Source of the DNA: Mobula hypostoma
Taxonomy: Eukaryota
NCBI RefSeq assembly: GCF_963921235.1
Contig: NC_086101.1
Location: 13,454,001 to 13,518,000, forward strand
Length of the DNA: 64,000 bases
Reading direction: 5' to 3'
This document shows, piece by piece, positions 7,474 to 58,485 of the stretch (position 1 is its first letter; every line of letters begins with the position of its first letter). The notes beneath the pieces are model-generated. The model saw only the letters and a program-made list of their open reading frames with translations. It made no database searches and was not told the DNA's origin. Made by a program: the position numbers and the translations under genes.

Positions 7474-7489
7474 GGCTCTGAACAGAGCC
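7474..7489 (-). promoter_or_regulatory. Histone 3' stem-loop (loop variant) of H2B pseudogene
   Basis: Minus strand GGCTCT-GTTC-AGAGCC followed by ACTC, about 40 nt after the H2B-like stop. Confidence 0.75.
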
Positions 7490-16025: not shown

Positions 16026-16358
<333 letters not shown>

Positions 16359-22463: not shown

Positions 22464-22827
22464 ATGTCGACCGCTGATGCTGTTCCCGCAAATGGCACGG
22501 CTGTGGGTTCCAAGAGCATCTTGTCAAAGAAGGGCTCCGAGAAACAGAAGAAGAGCAGGAAGGAGAGCTACAGCACCTACATCTATAAAGTGCTGAAGCA
22601 GGTCCACCCGGACACGAGCCTTTCGTCCAAGGCCATGAGTATCCTCAACTCGTCCGTCGCCGATATCTTCGAGCGAGGCTTCCTTCCTGGTGCAATACAC
22701 CCGCCGCCAGACCATCTCCTCCCGGGACATCCAGAGTGCCGTCCGCTTCCTGCTGCCCGGGGGACTGGCCAAACACGCCGTCTCGGAAGGAACAAAAACG
22801 GTCACCAAATACACGAGCTCCAAGTAG
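22464..22827 (+). pseudogene. H2B: Divergent histone H2B variant with frameshifting deletion
   Basis: Frame 1 ...[39 protein letters not shown]; after about 22674 another frame gives [50 protein letters not shown]. 11 nt (RIAx) are missing. Confidence 0.9.
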
Positions 22828-22858
22828 ATTCTCCCCGAAAAAGATTAAACCACCAAAC

Positions 22859-22874
22859 GGCTCTTCCGCGAGCC
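22859..22874 (+). promoter_or_regulatory. Degenerate histone stem-loop
   Basis: GGCTCT-TCCG-CGAGCC; top pair mismatched and loop non-canonical. Confidence 0.75.
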
Positions 22875-23869
22875 ATCCAATCAAAGTTAAAATGAGATCA
22901 TAACTGATCAGCAAAATACTTGTAGGCGTCGAATTAGAAGCGCATTAGATATAATGAAAACGAAAAAACCAAGGCTGCAATTCTTAAAATAAATACTGGA
23001 AGCACTAATGTCTGACAGCGTTTTGAAAGAAAGTAAACCTTTCAGTTCGAAGACCCTCGTCTCAGTTTGGTATCAAAATAACCTATAGAAAGTAAATTTT
23101 GTCCTATTATTTCAAGTATTCAAATGTAAGGTGCAGCCATGCCTTGGCGTTCACTTGTGAACAATCTGTACTTAGAATCTATATTTAAATTCCACGAGTT
23201 TTGAATATAAAAGAAACCATCCAAATTAATTTTATTATTGGACATTCAAAAGAAAATAGTAAAATCTCATCATCTCCAAGTCTCAATTTATTTCGAATAA
23301 CCAATATCAAATTATGTTTGACCTCAATATCAATTCACATTTTTAACAGACGTCAATAATAATCACGGGATGTGTTTCGGACACATCAACAAAATTCATA
23401 CAAACTTCTGTGTTCCTAATTGCAATAAAATTTGTCCAACAATGTTGGGATACTATTTACACATAAAATTCCTACGGAATTCCATCCCCCAAACCAAGGC
23501 TGACCAAATATTAATGTACAATTTTAAGGAAATTTGTCCAAATCTATGTAACTAGTTTCTGAGAATATTCCTTTGTTTTGTCTATGAAAACGCTTATAAA
23601 CTAAATACAAGGCTAGGCACCCTGACCCTTCGATAATGAGAAAGAGTAATGGAACATCTTCTGTTTGAGATGCTTTGACTTCTCCTGTTGTGCTTCCTGT
23701 TGCCCTGGTCCTCCCAGTGTATGCCAAAAACCTAGTGCGGGTCTTTCTGGCAGCAAATATCAAATACTGTACATCATTTACACATCTTGCTGTAGGCATG
23801 ATATTATCTTGCCAACGTTACCTTGAACCTCTCTTAAAAACTTAGGTTAAAAAACCATCCTTTATTTTC

Positions 23870-25593: not shown

Positions 25594-26337
25594 CTAGTAG
25601 CGCCGGGATCCGAGTTGGCGTTGGCGCCCCACCGGCCGCCGGGTCCGCCCGCGATTCACTTTGCCTTTGGCAGATTTGTACCGGCGATAGACCTGTGCCG
25701 TCCCAGCCCTGCCTGCTTTAGGCTTGAGTCGGGCACGGGCCTTGGCTTTGGCGCGGGGCCGGGCGCCCGTTTTGGGCCGGCGCTTGAGGGGACGAGCGGT
25801 GGTCTTCCGTGGCTTAGTCTGGCGCCTTGGGCTCCTCTTCTTGTTCCGCGTCCTCTTGGAAGGGGCAGGAGTGCGCCAAGCCGCCTTCCTGCGGCTCGTC
25901 TCTTTCTTCTCCTGCTTGGGAGCCGCCACCCGGTTCAGCTTGAAGGAACCGGCGGCGCCGAGGCCGCTAGTCTTCACCAGCGAGCCCTTCTGCACCAGCT
26001 GGCGTACCGTCAGGTTGACGCGAGCGTTGTTGCGGTTCACATCGTAACCCTTGGCCGACAGCGCTTTCTTCAGGGCTGCCAGCGAGATGCCACGCCTCTC
26101 CTTGGTAGCTGCCGCCAAATTGAGGACGTGGTCGGTGATGGTGGGGCCATTCTGCGGCTTCTTGGGCCGCGGCGGCGCCTTTGGCTGAACCTGTTGCCGC
26201 GACGGTTGTTGCTGCTTCTTTTTCTTCACCGCCCCATCCTTGTCCGGTGCCATCCGACCTTGCGGCGGGGTGGAGCCGCCACCGCCTCCCTTTTCACCGG
26301 AATCGCTGCCGTCTACCGTCTTCTGGTTTTCCGCCAT
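25594..26337 (-). CDS. H1: Histone H1 variant with Arg-rich (protamine-like) C-terminal tail, 247 aa
   Basis: Globular domain GPTITDHVLNLAAATKERRGISLAALKKALSAKGYDVNRNNARVNLTVRQLVQKGSLVKTSGLGAAGSFKLN; start MAENQ set by the TATA box about 80 nt upstream; stem-loop present. Confidence 0.92.
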   Translation of the reverse strand: MAENQKTVDGSDSGEKGGGGGSTPPQGRMAPDKDGAVKKKKQQQPSRQQVQPKAPPRPKKPQNGPTITDHVLNLAAATKERRGISLAALKKALSAKGYDVNRNNARVNLTVRQLVQKGSLVKTSGLGAAGSFKLNRVAAPKQEKKETSRRKAAWRTPAPSKRTRNKKRSPRRQTKPRKTTARPLKRRPKTGARPRAKAKARARLKPKAGRAGTAQVYRRYKSAKGKVNRGRTRRPVGRQRQLGSRRY

Positions 26338-26413
26338 ACCGGAGCCCACCAGAAGCCGCTCTGCTGCCACCTCCTTCTCTCTCTCTCGGCGAGACCCGGC
26401 GCCGACAGCCGTA

Positions 26414-26419
26414 TTTATA
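26414..26419 (-). promoter_or_regulatory. TATA box of H1 variant
   Basis: Minus strand TATAAA with GC-rich upstream sequence. Confidence 0.75.
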
Positions 26420-28289
26420 AGGCGGAGGCGGACGGGGAAGAGCAAACCCGGGTCCTCCCTCTTCCCTCCCAAACTGATCCCGTCGATAATCCTGTGCTTT
26501 TCTGTCATGCTAACCTCCCCTATCCCCGTCAAATCCGCACGCCCCGGCTCCCCAAAGCCATCCATTCCTGATCCGCCAGCTGCAGTTTCTCCGATGCCAG
26601 TCACTTTTTGCACCGGCTGTCCCCCAGTCGAAGAGCATTTCAGGCGGACGATGAAAAACCTGCGTTCTGCTCCTTCTCCTGCTGAAAACGGCCGAAACTT
26701 CATCGGCTTCTCGGGATGAAAGTATTCCTCCTACGCCGGCCAGTTGAAGGTAAAATTTCCAGAAAAAAAGACTCATTTTACAGTTTGTATTTCGCTTGAA
26801 TTCTTTCGTGATTGTGACTACGATAGCACAAATTGTACACCAATTGGAATGCTTAAATTCGATGAGATTAAGCCAATGAGATCTCTTAGCTTGATAAATG
26901 TCCGCGGTATTTTTAAAAAGCGGTATTTTTTAAATTACTAGTTCCTGCTTTTCTGAAAAAGAGTAATAAAAATATTCTAAATTATTATGTTGTTTAGAAC
27001 AGTCTTTCTAAATACGACGGAGCATGGCTTAGCTGAATGATTTGAATCTTTTACCATTATCATTTTAACATTCAGCTATTCTTTACGCAAATCTTCTAAT
27101 AAATAGATAATTTACAGTTATTTTAATACAGATTTCTGACTTGCTTATTTTCGGTACTGTAGTGGAAACGTTTGTCTACACAGATGAACAGATGCATTCT
27201 CCCTTCGTCTGCAGCTAAAATCGTGTCGTCAAGATTCGTCAAGCATGTTCAACGGCCGTGATTATTTCATTTGGCCAGGTAAGTTTTTTTTTGTTATTAT
27301 TTTAGTTCAATCTGCATAACTATAATCGAGAAACCGTGATAACATGGATTATAAACGGGTTTCCGTCTGTTTTCCCGGTTTCCGCACATCAAGCTTCGAA
27401 GTATTTAATCTAGCGTCCTTCATTCGCCCGGGTACTGTGGAGAACAATTTTAACGTATTCTTACAGAGGGAACCCTGAGAAGTGATGCACAGTTAATCGT
27501 TCCCGGCTGGTTTTATTCTTATTTAAAGTCAACAAAAAGTTCCGCTTTAATTATGGCATTGCTTATTTGAATTTAGCAGCAACGAGATTAAACTGAGGGG
27601 TTGGGGAGGAGGTTAGATTATTCCTACATAGCAAAATGTGCAGTAAACGAGGTGTTGTGCAATATTTCTTCAGCTTTTTCAGCAACAATACGAGTATAAA
27701 CGTATATCCACTGACAAGTGTTGGCCAAGAACTTAAAATGATGTCCAAGTGGCTCGAATATTTTGGGTGTCTGTTTAATTATAGCACGTTAATCCTGAAC
27801 TGGATTGATTGAAATCTATACTTCTAGAACAGGATTCAAAAACTTTTATGTATTTACCTGGCCATGTTAACGTTCTTCTATTCTGTTTTGCCAAGCTTTG
27901 TTAATTTCATGGAACGTTAAAGTATACAAAATGTTAATGGTCTGGTTTATATTTCTAACGTGCAAAATCTAAAATGTAGTTACTTTCTTTGTCAATAAAA
28001 GCTTTTGTGAATGCAATTAAGAGTGGAAGATGCAAGTGTTATTAAAGTCAAAACAATCTATATCTTAAAATGACTGTTCTTTTTGATACACTTGTCCCAT
28101 AAGAGAATGCATGTTTCTCGAAAACAATTAAAAACAAACAAACTTCTGCAGTTTCTTTTAGGACACAGAACATAGATCCTGTATGGTACAGGATCAGGCC
28201 CTTTGCCCCACAATGTTGTGGCAGACAAATTTAATTAATAATCAAATGGCTAACTAAACCAATCTCTTCTGCCTACGCAATATCCTGAC

Positions 28290-38310: not shown

Positions 38311-38889
38311 GGCAGATCAGGCCTTGAACTACTAAATGGCCACGCAGTTGCCCTGAAATGAGTCACAGATCTTTCAAAGAAAGTAAGGGCAGCTGCCAAG
38401 AGTAAAACAAAACTCTTTCTACGCGTATTTCTTCATCCATTTCAGCAGATGTCTTCCAAAGGGGGAGAGAATAGAGACGATTCGCCGTTTCCCAAAATCC
38501 GCGGGGTTAAAGCAGCAAGTTCAAAGTCAGGTTTGTTGCAGAGGTATGCGTACGCAGGAAATAAATTCAATGGAAAATAACTTGGTACACAGCATATTAT
38601 AAGCATTAACAGAAACTTAAATTGACATAATTTAACCAAAAAAAAACAATAGAGGAAATTGAAAAGGAAACAAAAAAGTAATACAGCCCGAGGTTAGGTT
38701 CCGGAAGTGTTGAACCCGGCCAAAGGAAAAGTACAGTACTGTATACAACTTGAAGAGCTGCGGGGTGGGCGACGTGCCGGGGCGAACCCAACTCCGTGAG
38801 CAGGAGCAGGTTGGTTCCACCTCGTCCGCTTCCCGCCTTTAAAAGGAGAGCAGCCGCCGCCGCGCCGCGTCTTGAGGCGAGTGCGTGGG

Positions 38890-39582
38890 ATGGCTGACAT
38901 GGTTCCTGCTAACGACGAGGGCGCGGCTCCCAACTGCCCCTTTCCTGCCACCAGTGGCCTGCTCTCGGCTGCCAAGAAGAAGGCAGGTTATAGGGCACAG
39001 AAGAAGAAAGGCACGGTGGCCGCCACCAAGGAGCGCCAGGCGACCAAGCTGGGCGCCGTGAAGACCACCTCGGCCGCCGGCTCCCGCCCTCGTCAGCCGC
39101 CCGACACCTTGCGTTGCAAAGGTTCCGCCGGCAGCTCTGCTTCCGCTCTCCGCTCGAATCAGGAGGGGGAAGGCGAGCAGAGAGAGGTCGAGAAGCAGAG
39201 CAAAAAGGTGGTTCGGAAGAGAGCTGCAGCCGCAAAGCCCACTGCCCGGAAAAGAGCCGCAGCAGCCGAGCCCAGTGCCCGGAAAAGAGCCGCAGCAGCC
39301 GAGCCCAGTGCCCGGAAAAGAGCCGCAGTAGCCGAGCCCGCTGCCCGGAAAAGAGCCGCAGCAACCAAGCCCGCTGCCCGGAAAAGAGCCGCAGCAACCA
39401 AGCCAGCTGCCCGGAAAAGAGCCGCAGCAACCAAGCCAGCTGCCCGGAAAAGAGCCGTAGCAACCAAGCCCACTGCCCGGAAGCCGGCGGCCAAAAGCCC
39501 TCGCAAGTGCACGACCGCCATGGCCAAAAAAGCGCCCAAGCGGCCCGCTGTTTACAGGGCAGCCAGGCCGTCAAACAGATAG
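38890..39582 (+). CDS. H1-derived basic protein with deleted globular domain and 8 x 11-aa repeat, 230 aa
   Basis: Residual H1 blocks VAATKERQ, SAAG, KGS; clear paralogy to 56825-57421; open frame; TTTAAAA about 50 nt upstream; perfect stem-loop 27 nt after the stop. Confidence 0.85.
   Translation: MADMVPANDEGAAPNCPFPATSGLLSAAKKKAGYRAQKKKGTVAATKERQATKLGAVKTTSAAGSRPRQPPDTLRCKGSAGSSASALRSNQEGEGEQREVEKQSKKVVRKRAAAAKPTARKRAAAAEPSARKRAAAAEPSARKRAAVAEPAARKRAAATKPAARKRAAATKPAARKRAAATKPAARKRAVATKPTARKPAAKSPRKCTTAMAKKAPKRPAVYRAARPSNR
39214..39477 (+). repeat. 33-bp coding tandem repeat x8 (RKRAAA[A/T][K/E]P[A/S/T]A)
   Basis: Unit cggaaaagagccgcagcaaccaagcccgctgcc. Confidence 0.95.
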
Positions 39583-39609
39583 ATGGAAGCCAACTATCCG
39601 AACACAAAA

Positions 39610-39625
39610 GGCTCTTTTCAGAGCC
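39610..39625 (+). promoter_or_regulatory. Histone 3' stem-loop
   Basis: AAAA-GGCTCTTTTCAGAGCC-AC; canonical. Confidence 0.95.
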
Positions 39626-40603: not shown

Positions 40604-41008
<405 letters not shown>

Positions 41009-41039: not shown

Positions 41040-41055
41040 GGCTCTTTTAAGAGCC
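41040..41055 (+). promoter_or_regulatory. Histone 3' stem-loop (H2A)
   Basis: GGCTCTTTTAAGAGCC. Confidence 0.95.
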
Positions 41056-45080: not shown

Positions 45081-45457
45081 ATGATGTGAAATTGTTAGGA
45101 GTAGTGGTACTAAAGCCAAGACTCGATCATGTCGCGCTGGATTGTAGTTCCCTGTAGGTCGTATCCATCGCCTTTTTCCCGGAGGGAATTATGCTGAATG
45201 AGTAGGGGCTGGAGCTCCGGTCTATCTGGCGCATTTCTCGAGTATCTAACGGCCCAGATCTTGGGACTGGCGGGTAACGCGGCCCGGGACGACAAGAAGA
45301 TGAGGATCATTTCCCGCTACCTACAGCTCGCCGTCTGCAACGATGAAGAGCCCAACTGTTGTGTGGTGTCACCATCGCCCAGCGTGGAGTACAGCCCAAC
45401 CTTCAGGCTGGGCTGCTGCACAAGAAAATGGGTCAACCCAGCAAAATATACATCTGG
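45081..45457 (+). pseudogene. Histone H2A pseudogene
   Basis: [20 protein letters not shown]...[15 protein letters not shown] / [39 protein letters not shown] / [30 protein letters not shown]; stops and frameshifts; CCAAT 44991 and TATA about 45027; no stem-loop found. Confidence 0.9.
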
Positions 45458-46620
45458 GCGATCAAGCAAACATTCAGACTGGTATATTACAAGCTCACCA
45501 GTCTTATTTCTAAAGGGCCTCAATTTAATTACACGGATTCATGAGAGGCGAAAGCTGGAAATGTGTCCGAATATTCTGCGCCTAGTTCATTTTGGATTTG
45601 TGCTTGACTATCTTTAATTTATTAAATTAATGCAATAAATTTGTTGCAATTAAAAACTTACTTCAATCACCTAAATGTGTGTGTCGGGTTGGGGGATGGT
45701 GAAGGAGAGCATTTAAAACCTGTCTCAGTTTTCACGGAAACTTCCCTTTGAGTTGATCTGTGCGGCAAACTTTTAAACATTCATTAGCGGATAATACAAT
45801 AAGGGAAACCTCAGGAAAGCGAGGAGGGTTGTTCCAAAAGGTTTCGAAAAAAATAACTCCATGACGAACCCTCTGCATGCAGAAGGCGCAGTTTCCTGCC
45901 CAAAGTTCATCAATCCACTCGACAAATATTGCAGTTAAACTTGCCCTCATGCTAATTATAAAATTAATTTCATTCACAAGTCTTAAAATAACATGAACTT
46001 GGAAGGGGCTTTTCACCTTGTAAGTTATTTAATTAGCGGGATGTATCTTCTAAATAAACTCAAAACGGCAAGGACTATCCCATATTGAATACTGGTTAAC
46101 AGCTACCTTAGAAGTTCACAGCAAAAAAGAGTTTTTTGGTGGCAAATGCTTTAATTGGGGAGAAACACATTTTGATAGCATTTTTAAAAACTGCCACCGT
46201 TTAAATATCGTATTTCTGTGGTACAAATACAAATATTCTGGTTACCAAGTAGCAATTGTGTACTAAGAAACGTAGTTTGCATACAGTTCCTCTACATGAA
46301 TTCAAAAGTGACCAATCAATGGGTTTCATTTTAACCAATGATATTATTTCACGAACCACCAATCAGAATTTGTAATTGCGTCCCACGGAATTTGCCCAGT
46401 ACCCAGAAAGCAGAAGCTGACGTAAAGGCGGGTGAACCAATGAGAACGTAGTCTTTCACCCAATGACGGCGACGTTGTTAGATTTTGCATTTTGACAAAG
46501 ATGTTTGGCAAAAGATACGTATTCACTCACATATCTAATAAAAAAAAGATATTTAAATGCAATCGTTTCAACCGTCCCGGTTTATATGGCGCTGGTGAAG
46601 CACAGCGACAACTTGCTGGT

Positions 46621-51837: not shown

Positions 51838-51862
51838 CCAGGTCCGCGCAGACGGTATAAAA
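51838..51862 (+). promoter_or_regulatory. H4 promoter (GGTCCG element + TATAAAA)
   Basis: ccaGGTCCGc at 51838-51847 and TATAAAA at 51856-51862; palindrome cgtcacgtgacg at about 51782. Confidence 0.8.
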
Positions 51863-51909: not shown

Positions 51910-52224
<315 letters not shown>

Positions 52225-56250: not shown

Positions 56251-56786
56251 TAGTCCTCGAATAATTAATTCTGAAAGTGATAGATATACATCAAATAATC
56301 AGGAACTGACAGATACGGCTGAAAGCTGGATTCCTGATCTTAATGATTCTTGAGTACGATTCATAGGACATGAATGCCACAAAAAGCAGAATCCATCACC
56401 ACCATGCAGCCCATGCCCTCTACTCGCTCCGACCATTGGGCAGCAGGTACACGGAGCTTAGGTCCCACACCAACAGCTTCAAGAAGCTGGACCAGGAAGG
56501 ATATCTTTACTCACTTCCACTCTGAACTGATTTCACAACCTATGGACTCACTAACTCATGTTCTCAGTATTATTTGTTTTTCTTTTGTATTTTGTTTGTC
56601 ACTGCAGTTTTCACTTACTGTATTTCTTGGTTGTACTGATAATGGTTGTAAGAAAATGTATCTCGGGTCAGTATGTGGTGTCGTATGCATATTTGCTAAT
56701 AAATTTACTTTATATGTGATTAACTGTGGACTTAGTACTGTTCCTGGATGTTACTGCGCAGCCCTCCCCTCTGAAGATGTGTGCGC

Positions 56787-56802
56787 GGCTCTGAAAAGAG
56801 CC
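56787..56802 (-). promoter_or_regulatory. Histone 3' stem-loop
   Basis: Minus strand AAA-GGCTCTTTTCAGAGCC. Confidence 0.93.
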
Positions 56803-56824
56803 TTTGTTTTCAGATGCTTGACCT

Positions 56825-57421
56825 CTATTTCCGTTTGACAGCCCGGTGGCCACGCCCGGCAGTCCGGGAAGCAGCGGGACGCTTGGGCGCTTTTTTGGCC
56901 TTGGTCGTCGTGCGCTTGGTGGGACTCTTGGCACGATTCCGGGCAGCGGGCTTGGCTGCCGCCGATCTCTTCGGAGCCGTTTTTCTGGTCGCTGCTTTCT
57001 TCTTCGTCCCTCCTTTCCTCCGGTCCTCGGACTCTCCCTGCTCGCCCTGCGCTTCCCGATCCGGGTGGGGAGCGGAAGCGGAGCTGCCGGCGACAGTGCC
57101 TTCCACAGTGGAACCCTTGTTAGGCAAGGTGTCGGCCGGCAGGTTGGAGCGGGCGACGGCCTTGTCCGCCTCGTAGCCAGCGGCCGAGATGGGTTTCTTC
57201 ACACCGCCCAGCTTAGGAGCCTGTCGCTCTTTGGTGGCGGCCACCACCTCCGCGATCTGCTCAACCACCATGGCCGCCGTCGCCTTTTGTGACCGATGGA
57301 CCGCCTTCTTCTTAGCCGCAGTACCGACCGCGGCCGAAGGGGCGGCGAAGTCGGAACCGGCAGGAAGATCGGGAGGAAGAGCGGCGGGAGTATCAGCCTT
57401 GGCGGGAACGACCTCAGCCAT
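56825..57421 (-). CDS. H1-derived protein with degenerate globular domain, 198 aa
   Basis: MAE start; VVEQIAEVVAATKERQAPKLGGVKKPISAAGYEADKAVARSNLPADTLPNKGSTVEGTVAGSSASA is colinear with the H1 winged helix; K/A/P/R tail; stem-loop; CCAAT and GC boxes at 57529-57588. Confidence 0.88.
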   Translation of the reverse strand: MAEVVPAKADTPAALPPDLPAGSDFAAPSAAVGTAAKKKAVHRSQKATAAMVVEQIAEVVAATKERQAPKLGGVKKPISAAGYEADKAVARSNLPADTLPNKGSTVEGTVAGSSASAPHPDREAQGEQGESEDRRKGGTKKKAATRKTAPKRSAAAKPAARNRAKSPTKRTTTKAKKAPKRPAASRTAGRGHRAVKRK

Positions 57422-57839
57422 GAGAACCTTCCTGATCCGCGACGCCCCGCCTGGGTGGGGCGAGCAGCGGGACCCTCGCACATAATAGGGAAAGGTGGAC
57501 GTCGTAGAGCAAACCTGCTCGGAGCCTATCCAATCCCCTGCTACGGCGCTCCACTAGGTCCCGCCCTTCCCTGTAACTCTGACCAATCCACTGCTCGTAC
57601 CTGTGAGCCAGTGCCGGAGGGAGGTCGCCGATCCTGCTGGTCATTGTTAACGTGGAATGCCGCAGGTCTGGCGGGCGGAGAGGAAACCCGGTTGTAGAAG
57701 CCTCAACCCTGCTTACAGCTACCCAGCAAACACGCGTCGTCGCTCGGCAGGAGATTGACTGCAGATTGCTGCAACATTCATGGATTCGTGGTCTTGGACT
57801 ATTTTTGTGTTCTCTGTATTTTACTGATGAACTCCGGTT

Positions 57840-58485
57840 TGTGTGAATACTGTGTGCTTTACTGCCCCAGGCAATCGCCTGTCGGCAAGAAATAACATCA
57901 TACACTGCATACAATTATAAAGGAAGTATATTTAACAAAGAGTTGTTAAATAAAAGAAAGAGAAAGGCAACAGGGCCCATCATAATTAAACAGTCAAATG
58001 TGCAGATAAGTTGAAACTCATCTCGAAGTTGTCTTTAACTCACGCGCTGGACCCACTGTCTGCGCGAAAGCACACACCACTTTCCGAATACAGTAGCGCT
58101 CGAAATCCATCTCGAACAGACGGGCTCCCCCACAAGAATATTAACCCTTCCTCCTTGAAGCCATTCATCTGCGCAAAGCACCTTGTGCAACAGGGACGGC
58201 ATCCTCAGCCATATTCCCTCCTGTCTTCCCCCAGCTCCCTCCTAAAATACCTCGACCCTCACTGGTATCCGTAACAAAATCCTCTCTGCCCGCTTTCTCT
58301 AGAACCTTCTCCCAATTTCACCATCCAGCTTGGCTGACACAACATTCATTCCTAAATTGGACAACGTGGCCCTTATCTTTAGCTCAAACCGCAAACATGC
58401 TAAAAGCAATACAGACTGCTCTTACAGAACTACTAAAATGAAATACCTACAGCTTCGCGGTAAGAATATTGACCAGGGCGTTACA
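57840..58485 (-). mobile_element. Solo LTR-like element
   Basis: Minus strand begins TGTAAC; same family as 41790-42230. Confidence 0.55.

Follow-up and report, generated by a model that had tools for sequence, protein, structure and literature searches.

The stretch analysed here, positions 13,454,001-13,518,000 of the forward strand of Mobula hypostoma contig NC_086101.1 (64,000 nt; hereafter the window, to whose positions all coordinates refer), belongs to a histone cluster and contains H4, H2A and H1 genes. On its minus strand lies an intact, intron-less open reading frame (ORF) of 198 codons, terminated by a TAG at 56825-56827, which is 100% identical to the C-terminal 198 residues of the NCBI model 'histone H1.4-like [Mobula hypostoma]' (P0001) and is referred to here as the target (Table 1). 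The layout of the encoded protein is tripartite like that of a linker histone (residues 1-44, 45-118 and 134-198), with an extra acidic patch at residues 119-133. Our analysis indicates that this gene is probably functional and part of a gene family which descends from linker histone H1 and is specific to elasmobranchs, and that its product is most likely a conserved, largely disordered H1 derivative predicted to bind chromatin through its basic tail. The NCBI model is longer (230 aa) due to an additional upstream exon at 58045-58110 (minus strand); no contig with the proposed splice junction was found, and the 198-aa ORF was adopted. As the region around this exon (57740-58250) is covered by partial contigs of very high depth from all runs, and no splice is seen, the exon is probably repeat-derived and the N-terminal extension probably an annotation artefact.

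By alignment, the target is colinear with the globular domain of H1, as had been claimed in a preliminary description of the locus, and this colinearity goes far beyond what would be expected by chance. A family profile (alignment A1) matches chicken GH1 (1ghc) with E=3.9e-10 over 66 gapless positions and human H1.3/H1.4 with E of about 1e-10, and hhalign aligned the family with a profile of intact variant H1s of cartilaginous fishes at 99% probability (E=2.8e-18, 87 columns with one single-column gap). Using BLASTP, the target is 33% identical (E=2e-13) to an intact arginine-rich H1 encoded in the window (25597-26154, minus strand). The homology is shown by profiles because single-sequence Pfam scans gave no usable match: the target protein alone matched nothing, Linker_histone (PF00538) included, even at E<=10, Linker_histone was touched by only one of nine family members scanned singly at E<=10 (E=0.033), and no precomputed Pfam domain exists on P0001-P0009, the family members from the first homologue search. 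We class the target as a derivative of H1 and not as a member of the H1 family in the structural sense.

The preliminary description had treated the target as a single odd gene, a view which has to be given up, since it belongs to an old gene family present in at least 11 species. At least 10 further species of sharks, rays and skates possess orthologues or paralogues of the same architecture, among them homologues of 48-60% identity in Pristis (Pristis pectinata, 60%), Heterodontus francisci, Pristiophorus japonicus (three copies), Leucoraja erinacea and Heptranchias perlo, and further members in Rhinoraja longicauda, Scyliorhinus canicula, Chiloscyllium punctatum and Carcharodon carcharias. 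M. hypostoma itself possesses two more paralogues, P0013 and P0009, the latter being a repeat-bearing gene at 38.9 kb of the window (46% identity). Open frames of 178-210 codons have been kept in at least 11 species on both sides of the shark-ray split. In an exhaustive profile search among 1.84 billion representatives, all matches above about 90 bits were of the decayed-domain type and the named ones were all from elasmobranchs; no family member from outside the elasmobranchs was found in this set above the score level of ordinary H1 matches, and the chimaera Callorhinchus yielded an intact-domain relative only. The current annotation names family members only as 'H1.4-like', 'H1.10-like' and similar, and no description of this family was found in the literature.

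A maximum-likelihood tree (LG+C20) was calculated from the domain region of 39 sequences with 72 columns. In this tree, the decayed-domain family forms one clade (support 99/97) within a group (89/99) that also comprises the variant H1s of cartilaginous fishes and is separate from the canonical H1s. The target clusters with Pristis and the 38.9-kb paralogue (97/90); the deeper branching order is not resolved due to the low number of columns. The motifs AEQI..AVAATKER (helix 1) and R.NQ (start of helix 3) are common to the family and the variant clade and do not occur in canonical H1, and the named representatives of the variant clade all come from cartilaginous fishes. These results indicate that a duplication inside the arginine-rich variant H1 clade of cartilaginous fishes, before sharks and rays separated, gave rise to the family. 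The sequence VAATKERQ is invariant within the nine-row family alignment A1; peptides spanning AEQILEAVAATKER would be specific to the family. The acidic patch is found in most members and extends up to EEEEDGGEEEAEGGEDG in Pristiophorus, and the tail of the target contains KSPTK as an S-P-x-K site and terminates in the conserved KAPKRPAASRTAGR...KRK.

The strings on which the preliminary description had based its proposal of a full-length but proline-disrupted winged helix, VKKPIS (residues 74-79), NLPADTLPNKG (93-103), SSASAP (113-118) and the acidic linker DREAQGEQGESED (121-133), are all located in the target protein. Structure prediction, which it had suggested as a check, points in the same direction. 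Using the nine-sequence family alignment, AlphaFold2 returned a mean predicted local distance difference test score (pLDDT) of 50.5, with all residues at 70 or below; the only helix comprises residues 45-62, and the three-helix winged-helix fold with its beta-hairpin was not predicted. In the control, the intact arginine-rich H1 of the window modeled from a shallower alignment of six sequences, the pLDDT was 75-89 over the domain, and the full helix-helix-helix-strand-strand succession was obtained. The domain-aligned stretch of the family contains on average 12.4 large hydrophobic residues and 4.8 prolines, compared to 20.1 and 0.9 in intact variant H1s and 21.4 and 1.7 in canonical H1s. Where the variant H1s read RVNQTV.KSLVSKGSLVQT...GASGSFKL, the family reads RPNQSA.STLANKGSPAES...TSSASVHP; every V, L and F of helix 3 and the wing is replaced by P, A or S, and in residues 68-118 of the target the hydrophobic core positions hold P, A, S or N. 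Thus, the winged helix is modeled as no longer forming because helix 3 and the beta-wing are devoid of their hydrophobic core and have gained prolines, and its formation in the target appears very unlikely. The predicted loss of the fold therefore stands, but the part assigned to the proline in VKKPIS has to be revised: Pro77 occurs only in Mobula hypostoma, with Leu at this position in a congener and Thr in another ray as well as most orthologues, whereas the whole family shows the exchanges for proline and polar residues in helix 3 and the wing, and it is these that form the decisive lesion.

The regional analysis of dN/dS (omega), likewise proposed beforehand, revealed a corresponding pattern. 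A Goldman-Yang codon model was applied to six sequences on the species tree, with Scyliorhinus, Heterodontus, Carcharodon and Pristiophorus left out, and the likelihood-ratio test against omega = 1 rejected neutrality for the whole gene (residues 1-198; omega 0.47, p=1e-12). Helix 1 (residues 45-67) is most constrained with an omega of 0.17 (p=2e-6), followed by the N-terminus (residues 1-44; 0.34, p=7e-6) and the acidic patch plus tail (residues 119-198; 0.49, p=3e-5), and helix 2, helix 3 and the wing (residues 68-118) are indistinguishable from neutral (0.68, p=0.08). Pairwise omega according to Nei-Gojobori is 0.36-0.47 in all pairs; dS is 0.39 between Mobula and Pristis and about 1.0 in ray-shark pairs, and synonymous sites are not unusually conserved. 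A contig of a congener that is 97% identical to the target, with the ORF open, displays 17 coding differences, 4/12 of which are nonsynonymous outside residues 68-118 (p=0.004) and 5/5 inside. Judged from these substitution patterns, the gene is maintained, but the old fold appears to be no longer seen by selection. Conservation across sharks and rays together with an omega below 1 supports a retained function of some kind, and since both lineages have kept the gene under selection since their split, it probably encodes a working H1-derived protein. The proposals of the preliminary description that this function is new and that the protein is incapable of binding the nucleosome dyad have the rank of hypotheses.

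It might be argued instead that the target is an ordinary linker histone, i.e., a fast-evolving, tissue-specific H1 whose divergent domain folds, perhaps only on nucleosomal DNA, and binds the dyad. The strict colinearity with the globular domain without large insertions or deletions would fit this explanation, as would the retention of helix 1, the helix-2 KK pair, the GY motif, the Arg opening helix 3 and the KG preceding the wing, together with the tripartite layout and the basic tail; folding upon binding is also compatible with the AlphaFold2 result. However, the prediction failed for the target where the matched control succeeded, compared to intact domains, large hydrophobic residues are fewer by about 8 and prolines more numerous by about 4, N, S, D or G is found where GH1 has basic residues in helix 3 and the wing, Pfam does not recognise the protein, and near-neutral evolution is found in exactly residues 68-118. 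We therefore consider an ordinary, dyad-binding H1 unlikely.

The signals surrounding the gene are those of a histone gene (Table 1). The preliminary description had called promoter boxes and stem-loop intact, which holds for the exact hairpin, the two inverted CCAAT boxes, the GC box and the GTCCAC box, but not for the TATA element, which is weakened to TATTATG; in addition, no H1 box (AAACACA) occurs between 56600 and 57900. The hairpin pattern with up to two mismatches is matched at 6 sites in the window with 0.09 expected. Under the Rfam model Histone3, the target hairpin reaches 23 bits and is missed at the gathering threshold (34) but seen with an E-value threshold; the low score results from its 3' flank, which is GCGCA and not ACCCA. 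The element GGAGGGCTG, which is a candidate histone downstream element by its position and the known consensus, has the counterparts GGAAGGGCTAC, GGAGGAGCTAC or AAAGAAGCTAA at the same distance in orthologues. In the orthologue DNA examined (Pristis, Heptranchias, Leucoraja and Rhinoraja), the frame is uninterrupted in all four cases, the stop is followed after 21-35 nt by the hairpin, whose flank is of the ACCCA or ACTCA type, the purine-rich element is located at the same distance as in the target, and the promoter contains the block CTCT(A/C)C..(C/T)GTCC(A/G)C(C/A)TTTC followed by TTATA(T/A)A. The orthologues also adjoin other histone genes and thus reside in histone clusters. A further hairpin-like sequence of the window, GGCTCTGTTCAGAGCC at 7474-7489 (minus strand; one mismatch), has no ORF of at least 100 aa beside it and may be a relic of a lost histone gene.

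The arrangement of GTCCGC box and TATA element is also present upstream of the arginine-rich H1 (26412-26433, minus strand) and the 38.9-kb paralogue (38824-38844, plus strand), a GTCC-box/TATA arrangement precedes three intact variant H1 genes in tandem with the Heptranchias family member, and the promoter of an H4 gene (51842-51861, plus strand) shows the same arrangement in the form GGTCCGC. A GTCCRC box 5-14 nt upstream of a TATA element is matched 7 times in the window against 1.04 expected; this pattern misses the TATTATG of the target, whose element was placed by eye and by the orthologue alignment. One of the sites (26900-26919, plus strand) has no gene assigned to it. Based on the common GTCCRC box by the TATA element, the target is probably co-regulated with the neighbouring variant H1 genes. 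As judged from the H4 gene of the window, the box resembles the GGTCC element of H4 type, and GGTCC next to TATA is the H4 subtype-specific HiNF-P site. The existence of an H4 subtype-specific element of this kind is confirmed by a review (PMC5706932).

Table 1. Position and basis of the features of the target gene, in the order of its transcription.
Feature	Position	Strand	Basis
Distal inverted CCAAT box (ATTGG)	57583..57587	-	ATTGG at similar distance in Pristis, Leucoraja and Rhinoraja
GC box GGGCGG	57561..57566	-	GGGCGG or GGGCGTGG in orthologues
Proximal inverted CCAAT box (ATTGG)	57530..57534	-	Same GGATTGGATAGGC context in Pristis
GTCCAC box, 7 nt upstream of the TATA-like element, part of the block CTCTAC..CGTCC(A/G)CCTTTC	57495..57500	-	Conserved in four orthologues
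TATA-like element TATTATG, weakened	57481..57487	-	TTATATA/TTATAAA in orthologues
Coding sequence, 198 codons (ATG at 57421, codon 198 at 56828)	56828..57421	-	Uninterrupted ORF, match to NCBI model
N-terminal region, residues 1-44, Ala/Pro-rich; MAExxPAKAD..., AKKKA.(Y/H)R motif	57290..57421	-	Family alignment
Helix 1 remnant, residues 45-67 (VVEQIAEVVAATKERQ), best-conserved block	57221..57289	-	Alignment, omega, AlphaFold2
Decayed helix 2, helix 3 and beta-wing, residues 68-118	57068..57220	-	Colinear with GH1; omega; pLDDT <55
Acidic patch, residues 119-133, net charge -5	57023..57067	-	Composition
Basic K/R/A-rich tail, residues 134-198, net charge +27	56828..57022	-	Composition, alignment
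Histone 3' stem-loop hairpin GGCTCTTTTCAGAGCC, exact 16 nt, 22 nt after the stop	56787..56802	-	Exact pattern match
Purine-rich element GGAGGGCTG, at the position of the histone downstream element (U7 site)	56759..56767	-	Position; orthologues

Expression of the target gene is only suggested by the data, which consist of contigs only. Run X3, from a congener and with no library type on record, contains a 743-nt contig which as a whole covers 56678-57432 (97% identical). This contig starts 11 nt ahead of the ATG and extends 109 nt beyond the hairpin, leaving the unique promoter and downstream flanks uncovered. It ends 26-31 nt after AGTAAA/TATAAA hexamers, which would fit a polyadenylated read-through transcript. 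An RNA-type run of a second organism contributed a 264-nt contig over residues 46-117. The arginine-rich H1 is absent from run X3, so that co-expression of the two genes is not supported in this run.

Several observations weigh against a functional, disordered H1 derivative. An omega of 0.47 is high for a histone, and only six coding sequences entered the codon model; the domain tree rests on only 72 columns; and low confidence of AlphaFold2 is no proof of disorder, as the protein may conceivably fold on DNA or the nucleosome. Moreover, the signals of the Mobula gene are slightly weaker than those of its orthologues with respect to TATA element (TATTATG compared to TTATATA), hairpin flank (GCGCA compared to ACCCA) and Rfam score. 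The contig of run X3 could be DNA given its unrecorded run type, and the RNA-type runs of M. hypostoma contain none of the gene's words, with zero depth over the gene in X5; this silence carries little weight, as mRNAs ending in a stem-loop are lost in poly(A) selection and rare transcripts are missing from contigs. The weakened TATA box and hairpin flank and the absence from M. hypostoma RNA-type contigs, together with the near-neutral stretch from helix 2 to the wing, the other damaged histone genes in the window and the further-decayed paralogue at 38.9 kb, might suggest that the Mobula copy or even the whole family is a slowly decaying pseudogene whose frame and histone signals have survived by coincidence or by gene conversion within the cluster. 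This is quite improbable, given the open frames in at least 11 species across the shark-ray split, the rejection of neutrality for the whole gene and separately for helix 1, N-terminus and tail as well as in the recent Mobula lineage outside residues 68-118, and the conservation of promoter block and 3' signals. The strong constraint on helix 1 and the N-terminus could also be taken to mean that the conserved unit is no chromatin-binding protein, being a transcript or peptide for another use, such as a regulator of histone mRNA processing, or functional only in these two parts with the tail incidental, but as the tail is under purifying selection as well, retains its terminal motif and a net charge of +27, and synonymous sites are not unusually conserved, we regard this as highly improbable.

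For the favoured explanation, a functional H1 derivative acting on chromatin by its tail, the following scenario appears most likely. The family has remained in the histone clusters as an intron-less gene with histone-type promoter and histone 3' stem-loop; helix 3 and the beta-wing have lost their hydrophobic core and gained prolines, so that no winged helix would form. Selection still preserves the N-terminal motif, helix 1 (AEQILEAVAATKERQ) and part of helix 2 (KLG.VKKTISA.GYE), along with the acidic patch and the K/R/A-rich tail with its conserved C-terminal motif. Through its charge of +27, the tail would mediate electrostatic binding of DNA or chromatin by a largely disordered protein, as the C-terminal domain of H1 does, and the structure-specific docking onto the nucleosome dyad, which in H1 is provided by the winged helix, would be lost. 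With the tail, its S-P-x-K site and the conserved terminal motif, the protein has retained what electrostatic binding to DNA in the nucleus would require. The acidic patch and helix 1 may tune the binding of the tail or engage partners. The target would thus work like the C-terminal domain of H1 and not like the whole of it, still being made through the histone gene machinery. The disorder of the protein in vivo, its mode of chromatin binding, its tissue and its role are what we infer here.

The globular domain is the defining part of a linker histone and determines its position on the nucleosome. In this family, its fold has by prediction been abandoned, yet the gene remains within the replication-dependent histone system, and selection continues to act on helix 1 and the tail. 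This makes the family a natural experiment on the role of H1 tails and helix 1 in the absence of dyad docking. It also shows that the set of H1 variants in cartilaginous fishes is larger and older than genome annotation suggests, and the conserved promoter box and 3' signals offer a testable co-regulation of a variant histone cluster. Beyond this, it might be speculated, as a tentative and rather doubtful proposal, that sharks and rays since their split have possessed a class of histone-cluster genes whose product has a disordered polyampholyte in place of the H1 winged helix, with helix 1, acidic patch and basic tail left, and modulates the exchange of linker histones or basic proteins without binding the dyad. 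Such a protein might compete with H1 or act as its chaperone, e.g., during chromatin remodelling in germ cells, under the same GTCCGC-box promoter module as the arginine-rich variant H1s.

Several further observations concern relatives and neighbours of the target. In its paralogue at 38872-39625 (plus strand), deletions take out helix 1 and part of helix 3 and the tail contains about eight ARKRAAA(A/T)(K/E)P repeats; the gene retains an exact hairpin (39610-39625) and a GTCCGC-TTTAAAA promoter box (38824-38844). In Heptranchias perlo (L002, 4182-10597), four H1-type genes are arranged in tandem on one strand, namely three distinct variants with an intact domain (258, 220 and 161 aa) and the gene of the decayed-domain type, each with its own stem-loop and a GTCCG-type box before TATA; this compact variant-H1 array could be a reference locus for the family. 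Within the window, the H2A gene at 40619-41008 (plus strand) is intact and followed by a hairpin (41040-41055). Two further ORFs are probably pseudogenes, one of them H2B-like (22464-22895, plus strand) but following H2B for only about 70 residues, the other H2A-like and heavily damaged (45198-45617, plus strand); both sit among insertions of long interspersed nuclear element (LINE) and Penelope type. The two H4 genes (16026-16343, minus strand; 51913-52224, plus strand) encode proteins with five residue differences between them, including EEMRG and EEVRG, and both read RDSVTY. Since vertebrate H4 is almost invariant (EETRG, RDAVTY), the cluster may carry H4 variants.

Among known systems, the somatic replication-dependent H1s (chicken GH1, 1ghc; human H1.3/H1.4 in chromatosomes, e.g., 7xx5 and 7pet) have a homologous, colinear globular domain and, like the target, an Ala/Pro-rich N-terminal start, a basic C-terminal tail and a gene without introns that lies in a histone cluster and has a 3' stem-loop. 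In contrast to them, helix 3 and the wing of the target are devoid of the hydrophobic core and of most basic residues contacting DNA, prediction yields no winged helix, an inserted acidic patch separates the domain from the tail, which is shorter (65 aa) and mixes K and R, and the promoter lacks an H1 box. The nearest relatives of the family in the tree are the arginine-rich variant H1s of cartilaginous fishes (the gene at 25597-26154, minus strand, of the window, 31 kb from the target, and P0014, P0016 and P0018), which have in common with it the helix-1 and helix-3 motifs AEQI..AVAATKER and R.NQ, the GTCCGC-TATA box, the stem-loop and the same cluster. Unlike the family, they have an intact domain that is recognised by Pfam and folded by AlphaFold2 and are without an acidic patch; they also occur in a chimaera, whereas members of the decayed family were identified in sharks and rays only.

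The protamine-like sperm nuclear basic proteins of PL-I type are, like the target, H1-derived and basic, and in a feature search of the ESM Atlas the nearest chordate clusters were 'protamine-like protein' and 'histone H1.10-like' (both Linker_histone; 0.92), which is a lead only. PL-I proteins have kept a folded winged helix and are much more basic; the target differs by its acidic patch and a moderate net charge (+25). The closest functional analogy is provided by mammalian spermatid HILS1 (H1.9) and H1T2 (H1.7), lineage-restricted H1 derivatives with a divergent globular domain. The HILS1 and H1T2 genes are solitary and polyadenylated; unlike them, the target gene has kept the histone stem-loop and its position in the cluster. 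The family is not orthologous to them, as it arose, according to the tree, inside the variant clade of cartilaginous fishes. HILS1 is reported to be a poor condenser of DNA and chromatin (PMC6069787). A role of the target in the germ line is plausible.

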